A stretch of 64,000 nucleotides of DNA from Hyaloraphidium curvatum SAG 235-1 (taxonomy: Eukaryota; Fungi; Monoblepharomycota). Below are positions 7,001-27,776 of the stretch, piece by piece. The DNA is taken from NCBI GenBank assembly GCA_025558095.1, contig JAIVFI010000007.1, positions 682,001-746,000 on the forward strand. The letters run 5' to 3'. The notes under the pieces were generated by a model. The model was not told where the DNA came from. It did no database searches and saw nothing but the letters and a program-made list of their open reading frames with translations. The translations under genes and the position numbers were made by a program. Numbering within the stretch: position 1 is the first letter of the stretch; each line of letters opens with the position of its first letter.

Positions 7001-8140
7001 TCTGCCCTTGCACATCAAGCGCCTCTCAAACCCACCCAACGTAGTGCCCGCAATCGGCGCGTCCGTGGGTTGCGTGGCCCGGCGTTTGGTGGGTGATGCT
7101 GGAAGGGAGGGTCAAAAGGTGCAACGCGTTGCGCCCAAATCGGCGTCCGCCCACAGTGCCGGGAGCAGGCCTCGGATCCGAGATTGGTCTTTTCCACCTC
7201 GAAGGTTTCGGAACACGCTGCACGCGATTCGCAATCAGAACACCCGGCGGGGCTGCGCACGACCGTGTCCAACCTTCCCCACATTCAGAACTAACACATC
7301 CGTCGTCATGCCACGACTCTGCAACGGCAAAAGAAACGTCCTCTTCGCGCGCGTAGATAACGACCGTGTGAGCGGCGGCAACGGGTGCTGTGACGCCGCG
7401 CTCAACGCACCTGACCGTGCACGACGCCGAGACTTGTTCTTCGCAACGGCATTCCGTGCCCGAAGTTCGGCGCGTTCCTCTTCCGACATAGACGCTACTT
7501 TGACGCTTTGGAGCACGCGGTTGTAGATCGTCCTTCGTTGAGCTGCGGAAAGGGATGGAGTGCGTCGTACCGCGTCCGCCACTGCGGCCTTGGCCGCGGC
7601 CGCGGGGCTCTGTTTCGGAATCGCGGTTTCTGGCGGCGTGCCAACGGTCGGGAGAACAGGCGACAACGAGCCAGGGAGCTGACCCGACGGCGCGCTCATC
7701 GCGCCGTTGTCCGCGAGCCACTACGGCCGGGAGGGGTCAACGCGGTCGGTGTAAGCTTCGTACCGCCTTACCCCGTAAACCACTGCACCAGAACCGCCAA
7801 AAGAAGTCGCCCTCGTGAATGCTAGGTGCAGAACGGCGACCGCGGCGCAGAAGGCCACCAAGCGACCGCAGGCGGAGACCCTGGTCCGCACTGAACTGCA
7901 GCACCCGCCGGCACACAACGGGGCGCAGCGAGCGACACGGAAAGCGCCCCCGTGCAGACGCCGATGCTGCCTGAGCAGAGAGGCACACGCCGGTCGTCCG
8001 CGTCTGGTTCGGTGTTGGCCCCGCCACGGTGATAATCCCTTGCTGAGGGACATTCGTCTTGCCCCCCTCCCCACTTGCCACACACTTTTTCCCCAACCTT
8101 TTGACTCGATTTTGTACCAAAATCTATAGTCAAAAGGCAA
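4034..8140 (-). mobile_element. Helentron/Helitron2-like element, internally deleted (non-autonomous)
   Basis: 11-bp subterminal inverted repeats TGCCTTTTGAC at 4077-4087 and GTCAAAAGGCA at 8129-8139; 5' hairpin 8097-8106/8128-8137; 3' palindrome GCAAGAAGC-AA-GCTTCTTGC at 4050-4069; T-rich ends; encodes DUF6570-like and PIF1 helicase domains. Confidence 0.85.
4118..6389 (-). pseudogene. Helentron transposase remnant: DUF6570-like domain joined to the C-terminal PIF1 helicase; HUH Rep and Walker A absent
   Basis: ALANGNWTG..IRKQKVLAFLRWLKKNNPDY is followed by VLDEMGMV, FGG..GDFYQLPPV, NGS and MTVHFSQGQTL. A frameshift near 4370 leads into YTALSR. The deletion junction is near 5580. Confidence 0.85.
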
Positions 8141-8207
8141 GTCTTGCCTCCATAACACCCAAGCACCTTGCATCTGAAGTCTCCAATGATAACCCAGGCA
8201 GCAAAGG

Positions 8208-11126
8208 CTACAACCTTGCAACGCCTGCAAAGGAAGCAAGACCTGCCTCCTGTCTGGCTACAACACGAGCAGCATAGTACATCCCATGCGCATATGCAGC
8301 AGCAACCTTGTTTGCATCATGGGCAATGTATGACGTGAGGGAGAGCCAAATGATGGCAAGCCATGCATGATGCCGGACTGAGAAACACGCCAGTGCCTCG
8401 GATGGCCAGTCAGCAAGACCATCCTTGATGGTGGCATCTCCAGCTGCAGAAACAGGCAACCCGTACTGGACCGCAGAGTTTAGGGCATCGTATCCCGAAA
8501 GTGCATAGAGCACCTTGGCTTGGTCGTACTCAGGTGGGCCATAGATCGAAGTCTCCCCGAAGTAACCCCTTGGGTCAATAAGTGCAAGGTTCCTGCCGTC
8601 CTGGGACACGAGAACGTTGGAAAAATTGACGTCTCCATGGATCAGAGTGTAACCGGCATCGCGGGAGCCCGATCTCCAAGCAAGCACCGAATGACAGGCC
8701 GCTGCCACGGCGGCCACATCCCCGCCAAAGGGCAACGGTACGCCGTTCACGCTGCGGATGCCAAAGTGCCGCCAAATGGTCTCCACCGAGGCACAGCGGG
8801 ATATGACCTTGTCGAGCGCCTCGATGCGCAGGTCCCGGGCGGCTTGCTCGGGCGTGGGCTGCGACGGCGCCGGCACAGCGTGAAGCGGAGCAAGCAGGCC
8901 CAGCACGCGGCGAACGAGGTCGGCGGTACGCCTTGCACAGGGATCCCCATCCAGCCAGACTGCGACCGGGATGCCGTCGATGGCCTCCATGGTAAATGAG
9001 GCTGCAGCATCGTCGACATGCAGGATCCGAGGTGCGCGTATGTCCAGCTCCTTCACGGCGTCGTACCAGGCGAGCTCGCGTGCCTGCAGAGCCCGAGCAG
9101 GGTCCGTAAGCGCGGTCTTGCGCACTCCCGAGTCGCCGACACGTTCAACGCGGTTGAACGGTCGGCTGACCATGTCGTCGGCGCCGCCACGGGCGGCACC
9201 GGCTGCCTTTATGGCCGCGGCGTACTTTGCGGCGTCCCCAACATCGAGCAGACCGGGGAGAGCGACGGTCTCAAATGCACCAAAGTTGTCGACAAACACG
9301 TCGGCCACATCCTCGCCGTCCGTCCAGTGGCGGAGCCCGCGGAAACCGTGCACGAGGTACAGGCCGACAACGTTCCCGCCTCGGCCGTCGGGCAGCTTGT
9401 CCAGGCGCCCATCGCGAGCGAGGTAGCGGCACTGATCTCCGTGCACAAACACGGTCGTGTGCCGCTGTCCGAGGCACGTACGCAGAGCATCGGCTGAAGG
9501 AGCCTCGGGCACGATGTCGCCCCATGCAATCAGCAGGTTGGATCCCCAATCCTTGCGCCCCAGGGTGTGCGCCACCGTGGCGGCAGTGCCGTCAATGCGG
9601 TCGTACGTACGGATCTCGATGCTCCGGATGCCTCCGGCGGATGCATCGTTCTTTCGGGCCGCAAGGTAGGCGTCGGCGTAGAATTGCGTCAGATCGGCGT
9701 GAGCGGGTCGTACGATGATGATGGCTCGTTCGGTGACGGTGCCGTAAGCGTCCAGGATGTGGTCGAGCAACGGGCGTCCATCCAGCGGAACCAGGGGTTT
9801 AGGCACATCCTTCGTCATGGGATAGAGACGCGTGGCAGCCCCGCTTGCAACCAGCACGACTGCATCAACGGCGCGGGAGCTGCTCTTTCCAAGCAAGCCT
9901 GCGGGGTGCCTTCGCTGAAAGGTCGACGACGAGACCCCCTTTGCCTGGGCGACCGCGACACCGAGAACGTCCAGGAACGCCATCAATGCGGCCGAGGAGA
10001 CGGTAGGGGCCATGTTGATGTTGTCGATCTCGACGAATCCCTTCTCGCTCATGCAGGCCGAGAAGTCGCAGGCCGATGCCAGCGGCCCTCCCGGCTGCAG
10101 GGTGATGGCGACCTGCAGATTCCCGAAGCCCGCATCGCGTACGTAGCTGGCACATTTCACCAGCTCCTCCGTGGTGCCAGAGTTGGACACATATACGAGA
10201 AGATCGTCCGGAGCGATGCCGCCAAAGTCGCCGTGGAAGAGGTTGGGCACGCTCGCAGTCTGCGCTCGCAGCCCCATCGAAGTCCAGGTAGAAACCGACT
10301 TGGCAGCCACCAAGCCGCACTTGCCGATGCCGAGCAGATAGGTGTGGCCGCGACACGAGGCCACGAGAGGCACGAGCCACCGCAGGGCTGATCCACCCTG
10401 CTCGGGCTGCAGAACCTCGCGCAAAGCGCTTGTGTAGAGGCGCGCCGACCGCTCGACGAGCATTTTGATGGCAGGAGCCTTGCCGACGGCGAAGCGATCG
10501 AGGAGCTCCAGCCGAAGGTCGGCGAGAGACTTGACCGTCTTGACTGAATGATCAGCGGCACAAGCGGCCACGCAGCCGGCCGGGCACGACTCGACTGCGA
10601 TGCACGGCAAACCGGCCGCACGGGCAGCGGCGATACCCCGCGGCGTGTCTTCGACGGCGACGGCGGCGCGGGCTGCGGGGTCCAGGGCCAGGGCCCGCAC
10701 GAACCCCTCGGGAGAGGGCTTGGAGGCTTTGCACACATCGCGCGTGACGAATCGCTCGACGGCACGCAGCTCGGGGTGCGCGGCCTTGAGCGTGGCCAGC
10801 GACGCCGAGCTCGAGTGCGTCACGATGCACGTCTCGATGCCGGCCGCGGTGAGGGATCGCAGCAGTTCTCCCGCGCCTGGGGCCAGCGGCGGCGGCGAGC
10901 GGCGGAGGGCGGCGGCGTATGCGCGCGCCTTGGCGTCGCGCAGGCCCGGCAGGCCGCGGACCGACGGCGGCTCGACGGGCTCCGTCGCGTGCTGCATGGC
11001 GCAGTACTCTTCGGCGGTCAGCGCCGGGCGCCCGAACGACGCCAGCGCCTCATTGTACGCGGCGTGGTGCAGCTGCTCGCTCGCGATCAGCGTGCCGTCC
11101 AGGTCGAACAGCACGTAGTCGACCAT
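8208..11126 (-). CDS. Intronless four-domain sugar-phosphate/nucleotide-sugar enzyme: HAD phosphatase + KdsD/KpsF-like SIS isomerase + NTP transferase + APH-like kinase (~972 aa)
   Basis: HAD: FDLDGTL, KPSP, VEDTPRG. SIS: GIGKCG, HGDFG, SNSGTTEE, APTVSS, HPAGLLG. NT: ASGAATRLYPMTKDVPKPL, WGD. Kinase: HGDVNFSNV, IDPRGYFG, YDQAK. Likely ATG at 11126. Confidence 0.9.
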   Translation of the reverse strand: MVDYVLFDLDGTLIASEQLHHAAYNEALASFGRPALTAEEYCAMQHATEPVEPPSVRGLPGLRDAKARAYAAALRRSPPPLAPGAGELLRSLTAAGIETCIVTHSSSASLATLKAAHPELRAVERFVTRDVCKASKPSPEGFVRALALDPAARAAVAVEDTPRGIAAARAAGLPCIAVESCPAGCVAACAADHSVKTVKSLADLRLELLDRFAVGKAPAIKMLVERSARLYTSALREVLQPEQGGSALRWLVPLVASCRGHTYLLGIGKCGLVAAKSVSTWTSMGLRAQTASVPNLFHGDFGGIAPDDLLVYVSNSGTTEELVKCASYVRDAGFGNLQVAITLQPGGPLASACDFSACMSEKGFVEIDNINMAPTVSSAALMAFLDVLGVAVAQAKGVSSSTFQRRHPAGLLGKSSSRAVDAVVLVASGAATRLYPMTKDVPKPLVPLDGRPLLDHILDAYGTVTERAIIIVRPAHADLTQFYADAYLAARKNDASAGGIRSIEIRTYDRIDGTAATVAHTLGRKDWGSNLLIAWGDIVPEAPSADALRTCLGQRHTTVFVHGDQCRYLARDGRLDKLPDGRGGNVVGLYLVHGFRGLRHWTDGEDVADVFVDNFGAFETVALPGLLDVGDAAKYAAAIKAAGAARGGADDMVSRPFNRVERVGDSGVRKTALTDPARALQARELAWYDAVKELDIRAPRILHVDDAAASFTMEAIDGIPVAVWLDGDPCARRTADLVRRVLGLLAPLHAVPAPSQPTPEQAARDLRIEALDKVISRCASVETIWRHFGIRSVNGVPLPFGGDVAAVAAACHSVLAWRSGSRDAGYTLIHGDVNFSNVLVSQDGRNLALIDPRGYFGETSIYGPPEYDQAKVLYALSGYDALNSAVQYGLPVSAAGDATIKDGLADWPSEALACFSVRHHAWLAIIWLSLTSYIAHDANKVAAAYAHGMYYAARVVARQEAGLASFAGVARL

Positions 11127-11184
11127 TGGTCGCGGTGACTCGATGGGGATCGCGGTGACGAGTAGGTCCTTAGTACCGTTTACA

Positions 11185-11530
11185 GAATGAACGGAAGCCT
11201 CTGAGAAACCAACAACTAAGCCAACCACAATACCTCCCGGCATCCTGCTCGTACTACGGCGATTGGTTACGCCGACTCCGGAGCAATGAACCCTACCTCC
11301 ATTTGTTTTGGTTCCTGCTCCCGCCCGCCGGGGTCTTCTCAGTATCACTGATCGCCCGGAGAAACCGAGCCCGCGGATAGATGCCCCGCCCGATCAAAAC
11401 ATCATTGCATAGCTCAGTCGGGATCGGATCGGCCACGACCCTTGCTTTCGAGAGCGAACTCAAGATCGCAAGAGTTGACCGTTGAGCGGGATCGTCACAC
11501 ACACAGGAGTCGTTGGAGGGCCAAAAGACC
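11185..11530 (-). ncRNA. Candidate Fanzor omegaRNA locus / element right end
   Basis: Non-coding stretch directly 3' of the Fanzor stop, with several stems (CGGCG-TAACCAAT-CGCCG at 11257-11274; CGGAGTC 11280-11274 can pair with GGCTTCCG 11199-11192). Its position is inferred from known Fanzor architecture. Confidence 0.4.
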
Positions 11531-14500
11531 CTAGTTGACGATGACACCCGCGCTCGCCGGATCGCGTCCCTCGAAGTTGGCCCTCCGCGTCGAGTAGAAC
11601 ACGGGAGGCCTGCCTCCGTGGAGGATCTCCGACAAGGCAATGGTGCGGATGTTGGTGGCAGCCATGACGTCCCTGCGGCCGAAGTGTCAGGAGCTGCGTA
11701 ACGAGAACCCAAGGCAACGAACCGATTCCAGCACTTGATCAAATAATCCGGATTTCTGCAATCCTTGATCTGGTAGTGCCCGTTCTTCGGGTGTTGTTTG
11801 CCGACCCTTTCCCAGCATGCCGCACAGATCTGCGACGTCATGTCTTCCTCCACGTCCTCGGTGACCGTGACGCCGCGGCGGCGCAGGATGCGCTTCAGCC
11901 ACGCCAGTGCCGACCCTGGCGTCGTTACGCCGCCGCGCATGTTGTGACGGAACCTGGCCTTGCCGAACGCAAGTATAAGGCGCTCCGCTTCGACGCCGCA
12001 GCCCTTGATGACCTTCTCGGCAACGGCTTCCTGCGCGGTGTGCTTGCCGATGTACCGGTCGAACCGAGACCGCCGGTGGACCTTTGTCCCGTAGAAGCCG
12101 ACGATCGTGGAGAGGTGCTTGAGACAGTGGTGGATGTACAGCTTGGTGTCCGCGACCGTGGAGGCCTTGGCGACGGGCGTGTCGCGCTCGATCTCGAGGA
12201 TGGACGGGTGCCGCTTCTTGCGCTGGTTTGCTTTCCACGTGTTGTTCTTGTACCGGGCGAGGTGGTAGTACTCGCCCGCGGAGATGCTGACGGCCTTGCT
12301 GTTGCCGTGGTGCTTGTCGTCCCCCGGCGTCGAGAGGCCCGTCGAAACCGTGAGGATGGCTGTGCTGCCGGGGTCGAGCCCGGCAACGGACATGCCGGGG
12401 ATCTTGATGTCGGAGAACGACGTGCCGGGCTGCTCCTCTGACGGCTTCCGCACGCGAACCGTGATCGAGGCCTGCACGGCGTTGGTGGAGAAGGAGTAGT
12501 CGAAGTGCCTCGACAGGTTCTTGGCGCCGCCGGTGTTGACCTTCTCCGGCCGGAAGAACATGCGCCACCAGTGCTCCGGATCCTCGGCTTCCGCGGCGAG
12601 GTAGTCGGCCAGCGAGGTGGGCTCCTGGCCGAGCCGCCGCTGCGCCACCTGGAGGAGCTGGTGAAGAGCGATGCGGTCGATGAGGATGTGCTTGGCTTCG
12701 GTCGAGAAGCGCGGGAGGACGTTGAAAGGCTTCACGAGCTTGTGGTTGTAGGGAAAGTTGCGGAGAGCGAACTTCCTCTCGCTCTTGCTTAAGTTCTCCG
12801 TCCACTGCACTAGCTTCTTGCGCAGCTCCTCGTGCTCCCGCTGGATGCGGAACAGGACGTCGAAGAACCTCTGCCAGTAGTACGCTACCCAGTACGCGCT
12901 GAGGTAGAGACCCTTGAGCAGGTCGTCGCGCAGTTCGGTGTAGACGTCGCGGCAGATCTCCAGGAGCAGCGGGTCGGTCGTGACCTTGTCGTAGAGCTCG
13001 TTGTTAGGCAGCGTGAAGGGTCGGTTCGTGTTGGCGGGGTGCTCCCTCGGATCCCAGAACTTCAGGCTGTTGACAAAGTGGGTCGCGATGGCCGTGGTTT
13101 CACCCTTGGTGAGCGTACGGCCCTGGTTTGGTTGCTGGGGGCCAAAACGACCGTGCTTGTGCAGCCGGATGCGAATCCTGCAGATCGTCCACGCGCGCAC
13201 CCGATCGTGCAGGTTTTCCTTCACCGAGTTCATGGCAGCCGTCACGTAGCCTTGCGAAGCGGTCCGCATGATCTGGCCGAGGCCAATCCGTGAGGTCCGC
13301 TTGTAACCATGACGAGCAGCTCGTTTGACGCAGCCCAGCCATTCCGTGTCGCGGAACGTGTTCAGAAGCGGCACCAGAGTATCGGCGTGGTCTTCGTCGC
13401 CGTCGAGTGGCGCCGCCACGGCGAAGAAGGCGTTCAGGCCGAGGCTCATGTCCAGGTGAGGGTACCGAAGGTCCCCTCCCAGTAGCCGCAAGTCGCGCAC
13501 GTACTTGAAGAAGAGGTCCATGAACAGAGACTTTTCGAACGAAAGCTTCGTGAACCGCCCGATGGCATCCTCGATGACCTCGTAGAGCGTGGCAGCTAGT
13601 TCCTCCTCTGGGCTCGCGGGTTCCCGCGCCGTCCGGTCCCCATACCTCAAGAACTTTTGGAACGCCATAACAACGGTCCTCTGGGCAGACTGCGGGCCCA
13701 TGAGCTCGTCCAGCGCCTCCTTGGGCGTGAGCTTCTTCAGATCGTTGATGTTGAACACGCAGGCCCCGGCGGTAACCTTCGAGTGACCCCTTTGTCCGCA
13801 GCCGTTGGCGCTCGTGTGGCACGCAGACATGTAGTGCACGTGCTCCTTGGCCCGGTGCTCAAACGATCCGCACTGCGAACAGTACAGAGGCTCTACCCCG
13901 CCGTGCGCCGCGCGCGTGTGGCCCAGCGAGCCGCAGTGAACGAGGAAAGGCCGGCAACCGTTGGGCTCCTCTGCGGAAACGAAGCTATGCTTGTGCTCGA
14001 GCACGTGGTCCTCGTACGAGATCAGGGGGAACCACGAGTACAGCACGTTCTCGGAAAGGAAGCCATTTGCGACCATCTCCCACAGTTCCTCCTTTGAACG
14101 CGACGCCCAGATCCTCCCGGTGCACACGAGGGCGTCGCAAGGATGCGCGTGGGCGATGTCGCCATGGTCAAGCTCGCCACACGTGCCGCAGACCGAGTGG
14201 AAATCTTCGTCGTGGTCGAGCGTGTTGAGCGGGTCGCAGTGCGGGCACATGAAAGGCATGCGGGGATCGGGCCGCTTCAGATGTTCCTTGGTGTTGTGGT
14301 AGACGCTCCCGCAGGGAAATAACTGGCAGCCGCTCCCGTCGCCGTGACCGGTATCCCAATGATCAGTGTTTCCGTGACCGGTATCTCAATGATCAGTGTT
14401 TCCGCAAAGCAGGGCGGGGCAACCGGTGGGCACGTTGGCCTGCTCCAGGTGGGCGGAGTACTCCGGCGGCAGGGCCGCCTGGGCGGCGGCGGCGGCGGCA

Positions 14501-16320: not shown

Positions 16321-17469
16321 ATGGTGACGCCGAACTTCGCGCGGGGCCTGCTCGTGCTCGGGGCGACCGCGGCTGTGGCGCTGTTGGCGACACGGGCAGC
16401 GCTGGCGCCCGTAACAGGGCCGGCAGCATGCACGCCGTGTGTCGCGTCGCCGCCTTCGCCGGACGTTGCACCTCGCGCCCCCGCCGCCGGCGGCACGCGC
16501 CCCGTCTTCGCCTACCATGTTCAGGCGTCGCGCGAGAACGTTGCGAGCGTTCCCCGCCTGATCCGCGCCATTCATGCCCCCGAGAACGACTACCTCTTGC
16601 ACGTTGACGCCAAGGGGATCGGGAGCCCCGGCGAGGTCGCGCTGCGCGCTCTCGTCGCCAGCGAACCATACTCCCGCAACGTGCGCATCATGGATAGCGC
16701 CTTTGTTGCTTACAGGGGGATTTCGATGGTCCTCACGACGTTCGACGCGCTGGTCGAACTCGTGGAAACCTCGCGGACGTGGACACACTTCGTGTATTTG
16801 TCCGGGAGTGATTACCCCCTCATCTCGCAGGAGCAACTGGCAGCGGCGCTGGAGGAAGCGTCGCGCGATGCGGCAAACAAGACGCTGGAGGTCAGCTTCG
16901 TCAGCACTTTTGGAGCTCTCGCTACGCGCTGGAAACATCTGGCGGTGGATCCGGCACTCTGGGGGTTGAACCTGTCGTTGCATGAGATCTACGGGTCGGA
17001 AATTCCGTTTGCGCCGCCGCTACCCGTCGGATACGGCTCCGCGTACGGGGTGCTGTCGCGGGCGGCATGTGAGGCGTTGGCGCGATCGCGCGAGGCCCGC
17101 AGGCTGCTGGTGATGATGGGCGGCATGACGGAGCCAGCAGAGAGCTTCTTCCAGACCTTCTTCGAATGGACGCGGGAGGGGAAGGAGCTCGGAGCCCTGC
17201 GTGCCCTCGACGATCTTCGGTACTGGGAGCAGCCCATGGACAGTCAGCATCAGAAGTACCTGGAAACGCAGGACCAGCTGGCAAAGGCGCTGGGTTCCGG
17301 GGCGCCGTTTGCGCGCAAGTTTGCCCCGGACAGCAAGCTCCTCGACCAGATAGACGCGCTGAGCGCGCAGGAGCGGGCGGCCGTGGCAGTGCGGGTGCTT
17401 GGTCGGATGAAGCGAGCTGTATCCAATCTTCCGGCGTACGGGCGGCGCGATACAGTGCCGGGGGGCTGA
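16321..17469 (+). CDS. GT14 (core-2/I-branching/xylosyltransferase-like) glycosyltransferase
   Basis: N-terminal signal anchor; YLLHVDAK, LSGSDYPL, GSAYGVLSR, ESFFQT, FARKF. Confidence 0.9.
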   Translation: MVTPNFARGLLVLGATAAVALLATRAALAPVTGPAACTPCVASPPSPDVAPRAPAAGGTRPVFAYHVQASRENVASVPRLIRAIHAPENDYLLHVDAKGIGSPGEVALRALVASEPYSRNVRIMDSAFVAYRGISMVLTTFDALVELVETSRTWTHFVYLSGSDYPLISQEQLAAALEEASRDAANKTLEVSFVSTFGALATRWKHLAVDPALWGLNLSLHEIYGSEIPFAPPLPVGYGSAYGVLSRAACEALARSREARRLLVMMGGMTEPAESFFQTFFEWTREGKELGALRALDDLRYWEQPMDSQHQKYLETQDQLAKALGSGAPFARKFAPDSKLLDQIDALSAQERAAVAVRVLGRMKRAVSNLPAYGRRDTVPGG

Positions 17470-23296: not shown

Positions 23297-26200
23297 TCAC
23301 GCAGCGTACGAGAAGTAGCCTAGCCGCTGCTTCTCCTTCACCTCGACCCGGTAGTACATGCTGTCGCAGTCCTGGTTCTTCTTGGGGAAGAACTCGGCCT
23401 CGACGTAGTCGCCCACGCCGAGGCTGCCGGCGACTCGCTCGTCGTACATCTGTTGGAACGGGCTGGGCCGCGCCCCCGTGACCTTGCCCGTGCCTTCCTC
23501 CCTGCCGTAGTCCAGGGTGTCGAGCACGGTCACGTTGCGCCCAATCTCCGCGTGGGTCGAGTTGTCCAGCGTCCGGCGCACGATGCGCAGCTCGATCCGG
23601 ACGCCGTCTCCGCACGAGCCCCAGAGCTCGAACTCGGCCCGCACGTTGAGCTCCTTGATGGTCATGTTGGAGATCCACCGCACCATGGCCGAGTTGGCCG
23701 GCGCCGGTCCGCAGCACGGCTTCCCGTTGCTGCAGGGTACGAGCCACAGCTGGTGCATCCGGGGCTGTCCACCGATCTCAGCCTTCTTGCTGGCCTTGTA
23801 TCCCCTGCCCGTCGGATGCGGGCACGCCCAGGTGCCGGGTTCCTTGCCCCTGTCCGGGTCGTCGCGCCACCAGGCCAGCTCCTTGGGCTCTCCCCTCATC
23901 GTCAGGCCGTCCTTGTCCAGCTCCCGGTACAGGTAGAACCACCCTTGGGCCTCGGGCTGCGTCTGCGCGGGCGTGAAGTTGGACCATGCCGTGTCGACCC
24001 ACGTGTAGACCGTCTTGACGATCGGCGGCGCGAGGTGGTCCCGCACGCGGTTGTGCACCGCGCTCGACCTGAGCGTCAGCAGCGACTGGTTCTTGAGGGC
24101 CGCCATGTCCAGCACGGGGTCCGAGTCCTCGAAGCAACCGTCCACGACGGGCTCCTTTGCAGGATCGGTCAGCTCAAACATGCGCAGGGGCAGCGTACCG
24201 ACGGCGCCGCCGGACTCCTCGAGCTTCATCATCAGGACAAAGGCGCGGTAGGTCCAGAAGGGATCCGGCTCCGAGGCGTTCTTCTTGTCGACGCGGTAAA
24301 AGTCGCAGAACGTCTTGCGCTTCGCGACGACGGGGTAGTCGTGGAAGCAGCGCTCGTCCTCCATGCGCGCGTAGTACAGCGGGCCCGTCGCGAGGGCCGA
24401 CGGGTCGAGCGCCGAGCGGCCCCGCCGGATGCCGGCGGTGAGGGCGACCAGGTTCGAAGGGCCACCGAACAGCGCGCGCGTGAGGACCTTGAGCTCCGCA
24501 TCGCGCCCGCCGATGAACTTGTACCGCGGCGTCAGGAAGAGGTACCCGTCGGGTTCGTCCAGGCCGCGCCTGCGCAGCGGCTTGCTGCCGGCCGACAGCT
24601 GCGTCCCTGCGGCACCAAAGTCCGAGCTCGTGATGGCGCTGACGCCCAGCCCCTCGCCCTCGCACAGCACGTTGCGCATGTGCGTGGCGTTGGGGTACGC
24701 GAGCGGGTCCACCACGGCGATCCGGTAGTCCTCGGGATCGACGTCGCCCTGCTTCCTCGCGAGCTCCTTGAGGGCCACCGAAAACGGCCGGATCGGTTTC
24801 TCCGGATCCTCCGAGGGGAGCTCGTTGGACAGCCACACCTTGCGGTGCCAGCCGATCCACGTCTTCTCCGCGGCCGTGAGCGCGTCCGAGAGCTCGGGCA
24901 CCTTGGCCGCCGACATGTCGTTCTCCCCCACCACCTTCCAGAGCTGCTCGCCCAGCGCCCGCGGGGACTTTTCGAGGATCAGGCTGCCCGTGCCCGGCTT
25001 GATCATCTCGGCAATGCCGCCCGTGTCGAAGGCGACGGTGCGCATGCGCAGGGTCGCGCACTCGGCGATGACGTACGGCAGGTTCTCGACCAGCGACGGG
25101 ATGACCACCACGGCGTCGTGCAGCCGCAGCTCCTTGAGGTGGTTCATGGCCTCGGACCGCGTGAGATTGTTGAGGGTGCGGATCTGCCACCGCTTTGGCC
25201 AGCGCTGCACCTGCTCGCGGATGTACACCGAGGCGTCCGTGAGGTTGACCGTGCCCTGCTCGGGGTGCTCGTTGATGGTGCCGAACTTGCCGACAAAGTC
25301 CACCTTGAGGTCGATGGCGTCACCGCCGCGGGCGGCCAGGAGGTGCAGCGCCTCGGCAAACACGCCCAGGCCCTTGCGCTCCTCGATGCGGGAGAAGAAG
25401 ATGAGGTGCCGCGACTTGCGCACCTCGCCGGGCTGCAAGGAAGGCAGCTCGGGGACCGAGTGGTTCGACACGTCGACGATGTTGGGGATGACCGAGGGGT
25501 TTCGCGAGTTCCAGCCGCGCTCCTTGGCGTACCGCAGCATGTAGGCCGTCGGCGAGATAACGGCGTCGGCGTGCTCCATCGAGTACTTCTCGGCAAAGTC
25601 CACGCCGAGCGAGTAGAGGTCCGTGTGGTTGCGCGCCATGGAGCTCCACACGTGGCTGCCGTGCGGCTGCACCGCGACGAACTCGGGGAGCACCTTGGTG
25701 ATGGTCGGGTCGTCGCGGGCCATGAGCAGGGGCGCGGCAACGCCGCCCCACTCGTGGCTGTGGACGAGGTCGCACTCCCGGCCGCGGAAGTCGGTCATGT
25801 ACGAGGAGGAAGAGCGGCGGAGCCAGTCGACCACCGCCGAGCCGTGCGAGATGGAGGTCAGGGCGAAGGACCAGCGGCCCGAGTGGCTGCTTTGCACCGT
25901 GGCCCTGCTGCCGCCGAGGGAGGGGTCCACGCAGACGAGCTCCACGCGGTGGAGGGCGTAGAGCGTCCTGAGACGGCGGCAGGCGTTGCGCGAGAGCACC
26001 GTGGTGATCCAGCGAACTCGGAAGGGGTGCAGGCCGCTAGACTCGCGGTGGTTGGCCAGGGTCGTGGCCATCAGCCAGTAAGCCGTTGCGGTTCCGCCCT
26101 GCAAAGAAAGGAGGTCAGCGCAAGTCGACCGGGAAGCGAACGCCGGTTCTTGGTGCCCACCATGCCCTTGACGCCGTAGGTGTCCATGCTGAGGATGCAG

Positions 26201-26791
26201 ATCTTCATCGAGTCCCTGCTCAGCTCGGGCTTGGGCGGCGCCGCGGTGATGAGCGGCGGCAGATCCTCGGGCTTGGCGCCCTCGCGGTGCGCCTCGGCGT
26301 CCGTGGGCGCCGGCCCCGGGGCATCCGACGAGTCCCACGCGCCGATGCTGCCGAGCACCTGCTCCACCGTCCGCCGGGCGCTCAGCGCCCCGGCTGCCGA
26401 GTGCTTCTCGAACGAGCAGATGACGCCGCCGCCGCCGTGCCGCCGCGGCCAGCCCTGGTCGCCGGGCTCCGGGGCGATGAGGCACGACTGCCGCGCCTTT
26501 TCCTTGAGCACGTCGTTGGGGTAGTAGACGAACATGAAGAGCGAGAGGACAAAGGCGCCCAGGCACACGAGGAGGACGAGCTGCATGAGGAATCGCAGCG
26601 GGTGCGCCAGCGGCGAGCGCGGCACGCAGAAGACGACCAGCCGCCGCAGGAAGCTGTGGTGGTTGAAGAGGGAGCACGTGCACCTGGGGACGGGGCGGCG
26701 TCAGCGGGGAGGAAAACGGCAAAGGCGGGAGGTGGTCAAGAGCGCACCAGAAGCGGCACCCGCAGCAGCCCGGCTCCGGCGACGGCGCCAT
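23297..26791 (-). CDS. Type II membrane GT4-like (GT-B) glycosyltransferase with long C-terminal extension
   Basis: TM helix; KICILSMD..GGTATAY, HSHEWGG, SPTAYM, FFSRIEERKG, PSLVENLPYVIAE, TGGIAEMI. Two 5' introns; start approximate. Confidence 0.8.
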   Translation of the reverse strand: MAPSPEPGCCGCRFWCALDHLPPLPFSSPLTPPRPQVHVLPLQPPQLPAAAGRLLRAALAAGAPAAIPHAARPPRVPGRLCPLALHVRLLPQRRAQGKGAAVVPHRPGARRPGLAAAARRRRRHLLVREALGSRGAERPADGGAGARQHRRVGLVGCPGAGAHGRRGAPRGRQARGSAAAHHRGAAQARAEQGLDEDLHPQHGHLRRQGHGGHQEPAFASRSTCADLLSLQGGTATAYWLMATTLANHRESSGLHPFRVRWITTVLSRNACRRLRTLYALHRVELVCVDPSLGGSRATVQSSHSGRWSFALTSISHGSAVVDWLRRSSSSYMTDFRGRECDLVHSHEWGGVAAPLLMARDDPTITKVLPEFVAVQPHGSHVWSSMARNHTDLYSLGVDFAEKYSMEHADAVISPTAYMLRYAKERGWNSRNPSVIPNIVDVSNHSVPELPSLQPGEVRKSRHLIFFSRIEERKGLGVFAEALHLLAARGGDAIDLKVDFVGKFGTINEHPEQGTVNLTDASVYIREQVQRWPKRWQIRTLNNLTRSEAMNHLKELRLHDAVVVIPSLVENLPYVIAECATLRMRTVAFDTGGIAEMIKPGTGSLILEKSPRALGEQLWKVVGENDMSAAKVPELSDALTAAEKTWIGWHRKVWLSNELPSEDPEKPIRPFSVALKELARKQGDVDPEDYRIAVVDPLAYPNATHMRNVLCEGEGLGVSAITSSDFGAAGTQLSAGSKPLRRRGLDEPDGYLFLTPRYKFIGGRDAELKVLTRALFGGPSNLVALTAGIRRGRSALDPSALATGPLYYARMEDERCFHDYPVVAKRKTFCDFYRVDKKNASEPDPFWTYRAFVLMMKLEESGGAVGTLPLRMFELTDPAKEPVVDGCFEDSDPVLDMAALKNQSLLTLRSSAVHNRVRDHLAPPIVKTVYTWVDTAWSNFTPAQTQPEAQGWFYLYRELDKDGLTMRGEPKELAWWRDDPDRGKEPGTWACPHPTGRGYKASKKAEIGGQPRMHQLWLVPCSNGKPCCGPAPANSAMVRWISNMTIKELNVRAEFELWGSCGDGVRIELRIVRRTLDNSTHAEIGRNVTVLDTLDYGREEGTGKVTGARPSPFQQMYDERVAGSLGVGDYVEAEFFPKKNQDCDSMYYRVEVKEKQRLGYFSYAA

Positions 26792-27776
26792 TGCCCTGTG
26801 CGGCGAGCCATTGTCGAACGAGGGGCGCTTTGGCCTGTGGTAGCCCAGCGGCGCGGGGAGCCGCGGCTTGGGGGCGGCCTCGACGACGGCGAACATCGCT
26901 TCCGCCGGCTGCCGGTGCCGCGTCAGAAGTCTGGCCGGGCCCCTTCAGGCTCTTCTGGCGGTGTCTAAAAGTGCGATTGGCGGTCCGGAGGGCGGGTTGG
27001 CGGAATGCGGGCGGGAGGGTGCCGGTGCCGGCGGCGACGGTTGGGCGAATGGAATGTGCCGGTGCGGAGGAGGGGAGCACGACAGCAGTCAGTTCCCCGC
27101 CCGCAGAGCGCGCAGCAGCATCGGCGCCCACCGTTTCCCGCCGTCCGCGGAGTCCCCCGGGCCGCGCGTCGGTCACCGCGCGCGCAGCCGCTCCCGCCCG
27201 TCCGCCGCCGCCGTTTCTCTGCGAAGGCCGTCGCGCCGCCGTGCTGCCGCGTGCGCTGGAGGCCTGGCCGTTGGTCGGCGAGCTCGGGGGATTCGGGTGG
27301 GCTCGGTTGGGGGATGAGGGTCCGGCGGAGGCCGGTTTCCCGTTTGACCCCCTTTGCTCGTTTACGGTCGGAGAGGTGATCAGCCGGGCGGGCGGTCCCC
27401 CGACCCCATTTTGCGCAGAGATGGATCGGAGCGCCCATCCGAAGCCAAGGTGGGCAGAGATAGACATGAATAGATTCACTGCGATTGCCGGAGGGTTGAC
27501 ACCGCATCGGCCGCCGCCCCCGGGCCCCATCTTCGGCTGATTATCGGGAAACGTCGGGCGTCCCAAACCCGATATACGCCTCGTTACGGCCTCGAACGGC
27601 TGGATCGGACGCAGAAGCACTCTTTGAGCGTAGCCGGACGTCGCACCGCCGCCGGGACGTCCCAGCTAAGGCAGCAGACGAGAGGTGAGATTGGGCGTAT
27701 GCACCAGCCCCTTCGCACGACCACAACCCGTTTGCCCGTTTGGGCGCAAACGCCAATCACCCATCCGCCTCGTCCA

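Follow-up and report, generated by a model that had tools for sequence, protein, structure and literature searches.

Within a 64,000-nucleotide stretch of the Hyaloraphidium curvatum SAG 235-1 genome (contig JAIVFI010000007.1, positions 682,001 to 746,000 of the forward strand; hereafter the window), a minus-strand gene encodes a single 972-residue protein which, judging from its sequence, is likely to be a cytosolic, one-chain pathway from D-ribulose 5-phosphate (Ru5P) to activated D-arabinofuranose, that is, a nucleoside diphosphate (NDP)-D-arabinofuranose (NDP-D-Araf). The protein joins a HAD phosphatase, a SIS isomerase, a nucleotidyltransferase and an APH-fold kinase. An earlier reading of the DNA letters (the original prediction) had proposed a one-protein route from Ru5P to an NDP-D-arabinose, and this proposal is strengthened by an isomerase domain resembling arabinose-5-phosphate isomerases (APIs) and by a nucleotidyltransferase-kinase (NT-kinase) half that is homologous over its full length to the phage enzyme reported to make uridine diphosphate (UDP)-D-arabinose (PMC13326640).

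Four domains in one chain and the proposed pathway

Four Pfam domains follow one another along the chain, each above its gathering score (Hydrolase/HAD_2, 3e-18; SIS, 7e-9; NTP_transferase, 2.5e-7; APH, 1.6e-12). The catalytic motifs of all four domains are invariant in an alignment of 16 four-domain homologues and are all present in the fungal protein, in agreement with the intact HAD, SIS, NTP-transferase and APH-like kinase motifs originally read from the open reading frame (ORF). An AlphaFold2 model built on the same alignment has a mean predicted local distance difference test (pLDDT) score of 83, with long low-confidence stretches only in the HAD-SIS and SIS-nucleotidyltransferase linkers. 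The gene is single-copy, with only self matches at full length in the 31.9-Mb H. curvatum assembly. Coordinates of the gene, its domains and the adjoining features are collected in Table 1.

The SIS domain belongs to the KpsF/GutQ/KdsD type. The models kpsF, GutQ and KdsD are its top three in NCBIfam (82.6 bits, below the full-length cut-off of 203.7), and GmhA is absent both from the Pfam matches and from the top NCBIfam ones. In the PDB, its matches (E 1e-22 to 2e-12) include 5uqi (E. coli CFT073 c3406 with D-arabinose 5-phosphate, A5P; E 1e-22), 3etn and 2xhz, and Foldseek comparison with solved APIs gives template modelling (TM) scores to target of 0.87-0.89. The motifs comprise GxGK (GIGK), HGDFG, SNSGxTxE (SNSGTTEE), a glutamate (E366) before APTxSS, and HPxG (HPAG, H407). 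The five residues that make up the API active site (Lys, His, Glu, Glu and His), which we take to be K59, H88, E111, E152 and H193 in the numbering of E. coli KdsD, align with those of solved APIs and are invariant in the 16 homologues. A Pfam scan of the protein found no CBS domain, and since the CBS pair is also absent from 5uqi and 3etn, we group the domain with the single-domain API subgroup. The KdsD/KpsF-type isomerase without CBS domains that had been predicted from its motifs is therefore well founded, as its best matches in both sequence and structure are characterised APIs. The domain is also 29% identical to gp83, the isomerase of phage DLP3.

The NT-kinase half is colinear with DLP3 gp82, with the nucleotidyltransferase as the N-terminal half and the kinase as the C-terminal half (30% identity, E 2e-65, 555 columns). 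The nucleotidyltransferase, whose structural matches are MurU, RmlA and UGPase, has the invariant motifs GxxxR..PK, WxD and DxGD, and the kinase has the invariant K670, E684, HGDxxFSN and DPRG; over 28 diverse NT-kinase members, 26 columns are invariant. T4-like phage proteins match this half at 30-35% identity across ~95% of its length, and the matching phage records (368, of which 344 at ≥80% coverage) include DLP3 gp82 and Thanatos. Phages with an arabinose pathway include RB69 (gp55, gp52:53, gp51), DLP3 (gp83, gp82, gp81) and HY126 (PMC13326640, PMC6024577). According to PMC13326640, which cites He et al. 2026, AfhE of HY126 is an NT-kinase that acts both as an A5P kinase and as a UDP-D-arabinose pyrophosphorylase. 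In the phage pathway as given there, an isomerase forms arabinofuranose (Araf)-5-phosphate, AfhE converts this to Araf-1,5-bisphosphate, the HAD phosphatase AfhF removes the 5-phosphate, and AfhE forms UDP-Araf.

In the HAD domain, the four catalytic motifs (DxDG with D8-x-D10, T103, K136 and E159-D160) are invariant, and the best PDB matches are the xylulose-1,5-bisphosphate phosphatase CbbY (E 2e-15) and BT2127. We propose that the KdsD-type SIS domain would isomerise Ru5P to A5P, which closes only as a furanose because the phosphate blocks C5, and that the APH-fold kinase would then phosphorylate C1 to give Araf-1,5-bisphosphate. The HAD domain, of the beta-phosphoglucomutase (beta-PGM)/CbbY type, would strip the 5-phosphate to leave Araf-1-phosphate, which the nucleotidyltransferase would join to a nucleoside triphosphate (NTP) to give NDP-D-Araf. 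By analogy with the phages, the kinase probably acts on A5P before the phosphatase acts on the 1,5-bisphosphate, and the product is probably in the furanose form; its nucleotide is probably UDP, a point we hold less firmly than the pathway itself. We infer which of the second and third steps comes first, on what the HAD domain acts, which nucleotide is attached and what the product is for.

Table 1 The enzyme gene, its domains and adjoining features (window coordinates)
Feature	Positions	Strand	Proposed role	Basis and details
Complete coding sequence of the HAD-SIS-nucleotidyltransferase-kinase enzyme	8208..11126	-		ORF and translation, Pfam, genome search, AlphaFold2 model
HAD-IA capped (beta-phosphoglucomutase/CbbY-like) phosphatase domain, residues ~1-185	10572..11126	-	Proposed arabinofuranose-1,5-bisphosphate 5-phosphatase	
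Helical linker between HAD and SIS, residues ~186-245	10392..10571	-		pLDDT 51-76 over residues 181-230; helices 204-211, 216-239, 241-256
Single SIS domain, KpsF/GutQ/KdsD type without CBS pair, residues ~246-418	9873..10391	-	Proposed D-arabinose-5-phosphate isomerase	NCBIfam, PDB, Foldseek
Sugar-1-phosphate nucleotidyltransferase domain, residues ~419-650	9177..9872	-	Proposed Araf-1-phosphate + NTP (probably UTP) to NDP-D-Araf	Pfam, colinearity with DLP3 gp82
APH/choline-kinase-fold kinase domain, residues ~651-972	8211..9176	-	Proposed arabinose-5-phosphate 1-kinase	Pfam APH, colinearity with DLP3 gp82
51-nt GT..AG intron in the transcript, past the stop codon	7721..7771	-		Joint 7720/7772, CT..AC ends on the + strand
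End of multi-copy element (holds Fanzor-like ORF 11293-14259), stopping ~45 bp upstream of the ATG, outside the enzyme	11171..11348	-		Five other genomic copies

Distribution of the fusion and its place in the host genome

The same parts are repeatedly linked elsewhere. A prokaryote scan covering one genome per species returned 530 NT-kinase relatives, carried mainly by Lachnospiraceae with some Melainabacteria and Thermoplasmata-type archaea. Among the best 80 loci, which were examined for neighbours, a SIS gene matching the fungal SIS profile (E 1e-27 to 1e-37) was adjacent, overlapping or fused in 66, and a beta-PGM-type HAD lay nearby in only two. One archaeal locus (L021) encodes an NT-APH-SIS fusion, the isomerase gene of DLP3 adjoins its NT-kinase gene, metagenomic proteins display other fusion orders (SIS-NT-APH, HAD-NT-APH and NT-APH-SIS), and an unfused NT-kinase on a contig of 20% GC is adjoined by a separate homologous HAD_2 gene. 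That the same parts have been fused independently again and again is strong evidence that they act in one pathway. Two T4-sized IMG/VR contigs (L104, 168 kb; L107, 175 kb) match fungal residues ~242-958 in one stretch, and this similarity suggests that some phages may have the isomerase already fused to the NT-kinase. Among bacteria, an example of the linkage between NT-kinase and SIS is given by Butyrivibrio proteins annotated as GutQ (PMC6024577).

A full-length word search returned only the fungal protein itself, and the fusion family came into view in an exhaustive search. The latter gave 84 cluster representatives at E < 1e-30, ~18 of which share the four domains and their order, at 27-34% identity. 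Those members whose context was inspected sit on giant-virus contigs: one contig also carries a nucleocytoplasmic large DNA virus (NCLDV) major capsid protein and an RNA polymerase, a second carries Rpb1, an Evr1/Alr oxidase and thymidine kinase, and another is 409 kb long at 20% GC. Giant-virus metagenome-assembled genome (GVMAG) contigs in IMG/VR likewise match the fungal protein full-length, and a four-domain member is present in the transcriptome of the slime mould Ceratiomyxa fruticulosa. The closest relative is a eukaryotic gene on a 33-kb metagenomic contig (L006, 48% GC), 47-48% identical over its nucleotidyltransferase exon and 38-39% identical across the whole gene by tblastn, by which it was mapped. 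This orthologue is broken four times by 78-114-nt stop-containing, intron-like stretches at which homology breaks, and the third interruption, the single junction inspected, has GT..AG ends.

In a tree of the NT-kinase region, the fungal row has a long branch of odd composition, and its placement is unsupported. When the single nucleotidyltransferase exon of the L006 gene is taken in, it pairs with the fungal protein at 100% support; this pair stands beside the giant-virus fusion clade at weak support (84), and Ceratiomyxa is nested among viral members. We conclude that the fusion represents a lineage common to giant viruses and a few eukaryotes, and that it has long resided in the fungal genome and is no recent acquisition. 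Its host-like composition and the intron-bearing orthologue speak for its age in eukaryotes. The original prediction had considered the enzyme foreign to fungal metabolism and probably acquired from bacteria or giant viruses; the link stands, as the same fusion occurs on giant-virus contigs, and the tree is compatible with transfer in either direction.

On the minus strand, an open frame of 1046 codons extends from 11348 to 8208, and translation from the ATG at 11126 to the stop codon at 8208-8210 yields the 972 residues, exactly the limits that had been predicted. The deposited gene model begins 39 codons earlier, at 11243, inside a multi-copy element; the genome holds five further copies elsewhere, with 97-99% identity starting at query position 172/181. 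Because all homologues begin at the DxDG strand and the sequence above ~11171 belongs to this element, the start at 11126 is to be preferred and the deposited start is probably wrong. The element, which with its downstream tail spans 11171-14259 (-), contains a Fanzor-like ORF of 988 aa and supplies the start codon of the deposited model.

One public run contains 93% of the sampled words of the locus. From it, an RNA-derived contig of 3525 nt covers 7411-7720 and 7772-10853, the latter without a gap, and the remaining 10854-11126 of the coding sequence is covered by shorter contigs and nonzero depth. Since the contig skips 51 nt with GT..AG ends on the minus strand, the run is an RNA data set with a minus-strand transcript; since it runs gap-free through 7772-10853, that portion of the coding sequence is unspliced, in keeping with the prediction of an intronless gene. 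The transcript contig extends at least 800 nt beyond the stop codon into a Helitron-like block, with a further loose end at 7411, and 7411-8207 is either a long spliced 3' untranslated region or read-through into a downstream transcript. RNA contig depth rises from ~275 to more than 1000 at the boundary of the multi-copy element, and the Fanzor-like element reaches 4-7 times the depth of the enzyme gene.

GC content at third codon positions (GC3) is 74% in the enzyme gene and 75-86% in neighbouring genes, whereas the DNA that holds the viral-contig homologues is 17-23% GC. GC3 is 89% in the HAD domain and falls along the gene until it is 64% in the kinase domain; the observed/expected ratio of CpG declines from 1.3 to 0.95 toward the transposon block. 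One flank of the gene consists of transposable elements (the Fanzor-like ORF, a Helitron-like PIF1/DUF6570 gene and a long terminal repeat (LTR) retroelement). The other consists of ordinary genes, encoding a glycosyltransferase family 14 (GT14) Branch protein, HIS7, Nop56/58, a GT4 protein, an MBL-fold protein and a MYND protein, with HIS7 and Nop56/58 at most 12 kb from the enzyme gene. The transposable elements and the lack of introns could speak for contamination, chimerism of the contig, a gene that is a dead relic, or a piece of giant-virus DNA integrated recently, an explanation that we find scarcely credible: the reading frame is unbroken and keeps every catalytic motif, the deposited model sits on a contig of 890,790 bases, and the flanking element is itself a multi-copy resident of the same genome. 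Single copy number, RNA evidence, host-like composition and ordinary neighbours together make a chimera or a recent viral insertion unlikely, and the chimerism named in the original prediction as a possible refutation is made unlikely by the spliced intron of the RNA contig, the GC3 and the housekeeping genes nearby.

Alternative chemistries and the use of the product

The four domains could be arranged into other routes. In the order implied by the original prediction, the HAD domain would dephosphorylate A5P to free D-arabinose, which the kinase would then phosphorylate at C1. There is something to be said for this order, as many sugar-monophosphate phosphatases are found among HAD-IA enzymes, eukaryotic dephosphorylation of A5P to free D-arabinose has been proposed (PMC11301363), and a table in PMC13326640 gives the phage kinase domain as phosphorylating Ara to Araf1p; free D-arabinose could also serve D-erythroascorbate synthesis, and the product could be a pyranose, as in trypanosomatid guanosine diphosphate D-arabinopyranose (GDP-D-Arap). 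We nevertheless consider it unlikely, given that the text of PMC13326640 has Araf5P as the kinase substrate and the bisphosphate as the phosphatase substrate, that the HAD domain's closest relative of solved structure is CbbY, a bisphosphate phosphatase, and that a fused enzyme letting go of a free sugar would be wasteful. It appears improbable that a different sugar is activated, be it a heptose by the logic of GmhA/HddA/GmhB/HddC or another pentose or hexose phosphate accepted by a SIS domain of drifted specificity. The activity classes do equal those of NDP-heptose synthesis, the characterised enzymes are only 24-30% identical, and RmlD/epimerase-like genes adjoin some viral copies, where further sugar modification may occur. 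However, the SIS domain is of the KdsD/KpsF/GutQ type and keeps all five KdsD active-site positions, and the only characterised NT-kinase family members make UDP-arabinose (PMC13326640). The parallel with NDP-heptose synthesis drawn in the original prediction therefore holds for the logic of four activities and fails for the enzyme families, and the NDP-heptose pathway itself was rejected: neither a GmhA-type SIS nor a GHMP or PfkB kinase is among the Pfam or top NCBIfam matches, and the kinase has the APH fold. A route to cytidine monophosphate (CMP)-activated 3-deoxy-D-manno-octulosonic acid (Kdo) was also rejected. Kdo-8-phosphate synthase (TIGR01362) was not found in the H. curvatum genome, where positive controls matched, so A5P does not end up in Kdo, and the nucleotidyltransferase is RmlA/MurU-like and not KdsB-type.

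Several observations weigh against the single-chain route from Ru5P to NDP-D-Araf as we propose it. The HAD domain aligns with the phage phosphatase DLP3 gp81 solely at DxD (E 0.31), with no detectable homology, and its relatives include an inorganic pyrophosphatase, so that the role proposed for it would be the least certain of the steps. Identity to the characterised phage enzymes is only ~30%, and their biochemistry is taken at second hand from PMC13326640. In the H. curvatum genome, no arabinosyltransferase or dedicated transporter was identified, and the DLP3 arabinosyltransferases gp76 and gp77 have no match. D-Arabinofuranose is not known to us from glycans of fungi, although no exhaustive search for it was made.

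The likeliest use of NDP-D-Araf is as a donor for D-arabinose-containing glycans and not for DNA, although we hold this less firmly than the pathway. It is favoured by the glycosyltransferase contexts seen elsewhere, together with the lack of a DNA arabinosyltransferase homologue and of a Kdo-8-phosphate synthase among the genes found in the fungal genome. On the flanks of the eukaryotic L006 orthologue are genes for a STELLO protein, a pair of GT25 proteins, one GT2 protein and an FkbM methyltransferase, together with a TPT-family transporter-like exon; the best named match of this STELLO protein is from an aphelid at 37% identity, an uninformative level. On a giant-virus-like contig (L099, 3745-15699), a GT92 gene precedes the four-domain gene and GT61, GT25 and GT32-like genes directly follow it, and other giant-virus copies adjoin GT10, GT2 or RmlD-like genes. 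Relatives of STELLO, GT2 and GT25 are present in the H. curvatum genome, unlinked to the enzyme locus, and its STELLO-domain protein (C4:689655-690851) is 40% identical to the one beside the L006 orthologue. That the product instead arabinosylates DNA bases, in the fungus or in the fusion-bearing giant viruses, as it does in T4-like phages, seems to us very improbable. The sole characterised use of the NT-kinase family is indeed arabinosylation of 5-hydroxycytosine in DNA (PMC13326640), and SHMT and HNH genes lie near the fusion on one viral contig and thymidine kinase on another. Against this stand the glycan glycosyltransferases of the eukaryotic and giant-virus contexts, the transporter-like gene of the former, the missing counterparts of gp76 and gp77 in the fungus, and the fact that the bacterial and archaeal carriers are cellular genomes. 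If it were true, it would be the first such sugar hypermodification of DNA beyond phages and kinetoplastid base J.

Further features of these neighbourhoods touch on the supply and use of the sugar. A virus-encoded transketolase gene lies 4 kb upstream of the four-domain gene on L099 and could raise the pentose-phosphate supply. Two viral contigs have an RmlD/epimerase-type reductase gene (L012, 2-1057; L098, 9031-9957) immediately upstream of their NT-kinase or fusion gene, and one of these reductases is itself fused to a HAD domain; such sequences hint that some viruses may modify the sugar further. In a wider search, STELLO domains were frequently fused to RmlD/epimerase domains. The GT25 genes next to viral and eukaryotic copies have no detectable relation to each other. 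An unannotated protein family adjoins the arabinose genes on two AT-rich contigs (L004:7220-9946 and L012:2644-3471; 27% identity, E 2e-21), and its longer member has a faint match to GT9 (heptosyltransferase-like), making the family a candidate viral arabinosyltransferase; this conserved giant-virus neighbour has no match in the H. curvatum genome. Within the window, candidate users of the product are the GT14 'Branch' gene (16321-17469, +), which is separated by 5 kb from the enzyme gene, and, at a distance of 12 kb, the gene for a 1199-aa GT4-domain protein (23297-26896, -).

Comparison with known systems

The closest known counterpart is the phage UDP-D-Araf pathway that serves arabinosyl-5-hydroxycytosine DNA, with which the fungal enzyme shares the type of isomerase, the colinear NT-kinase architecture and the logic from Ru5P to NDP-arabinose. 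The phage steps are carried out by separate proteins, whereas the fungal enzyme gathers all of them in one chain and in a eukaryote; the phage phosphatase is a small HAD unrelated in sequence to the capped HAD-IA domain of the fungus; and the phage product goes to DNA, whereas the fungal target is likely a glycan. The bacterial and archaeal NT-kinases have the same NT-APH module (23-30% identity) and the same SIS type, in a domain order that differs from the fungal one and with a HAD nearby only in the two loci described above.

The single-domain APIs c3406 (5uqi) and that of Bacteroides fragilis (3etn) share their fold, active-site residues and CBS-less state with the fungal SIS domain, and the SIS domain of E. 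coli KdsD (2xhz) shares its fold and active-site residues. All three are free-standing whereas the fungal domain is fused, and KdsD supplies Kdo synthesis, for which the fungal genome yielded no Kdo-8-phosphate synthase. NDP-heptose synthesis (GmhA, HldE/HddA, GmhB, HddC) follows the same logic of isomerase, anomeric kinase, distal phosphatase and nucleotidyltransferase, but its isomerase subfamily, kinase fold and HAD subfamily are all unlike those of the fungal enzyme. AmgK/MurU, an anomeric APH-fold sugar kinase and a uridylyltransferase, shares the kinase-nucleotidyltransferase pairing, and MurU is a structural match of the nucleotidyltransferase domain. The trypanosomatid arabinokinase/pyrophosphorylase has a GHMP kinase and a pyranose product. 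It too shares the kinase-nucleotidyltransferase pairing, in the route leading to GDP-D-Arap (PMC11301363); unlike the fungal route, both this pathway and AmgK/MurU are salvage from free sugars. Giant viruses encode bacterial-type nucleotide-sugar synthesis, and CroV has a putative Kdo route including an API (PMC9614988); the API would be shared with the fungal enzyme, and an NDP-D-arabinose route is not mentioned in that review.

Plants possess a KdsD-type isomerase for Kdo. For this reason, the statement that eukaryotes are without obvious homologues of the prokaryotic isomerase, with GFAT proposed to moonlight as one (PMC11301363), is true for fungi and not for all eukaryotes. The synthesis of D-arabinose in eukaryotes is an open question, and here a fungus has a dedicated KdsD-type isomerase wired to sugar activation. 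The chemistry is known from the phage pathway described in 2025-2026, and the route is otherwise documented only in DNA-arabinosylating bacteriophages; literature searches found no description of the four-domain fusion, which is not proof of its absence. What is new is the single-chain four-domain form, the non-orthologous HAD, and the presence of the enzyme in a fungus, another eukaryote and giant viruses. The other associations of D-arabinofuranose are with the walls of mycobacteria and with the DNA of phages. If the proposed pathway is true, glycoconjugates of D-arabinofuranose would be produced by Hyaloraphidium, by no fewer than one further eukaryote and by many giant viruses, and one 972-aa polypeptide would suffice to make a rare nucleotide sugar from a central metabolite, an ability that would be useful in chemoenzymatic synthesis. 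It would also tie the DNA-arabinosylation pathway of phages to a wider family that extends through gut Firmicutes, archaea, giant viruses and eukaryotes.

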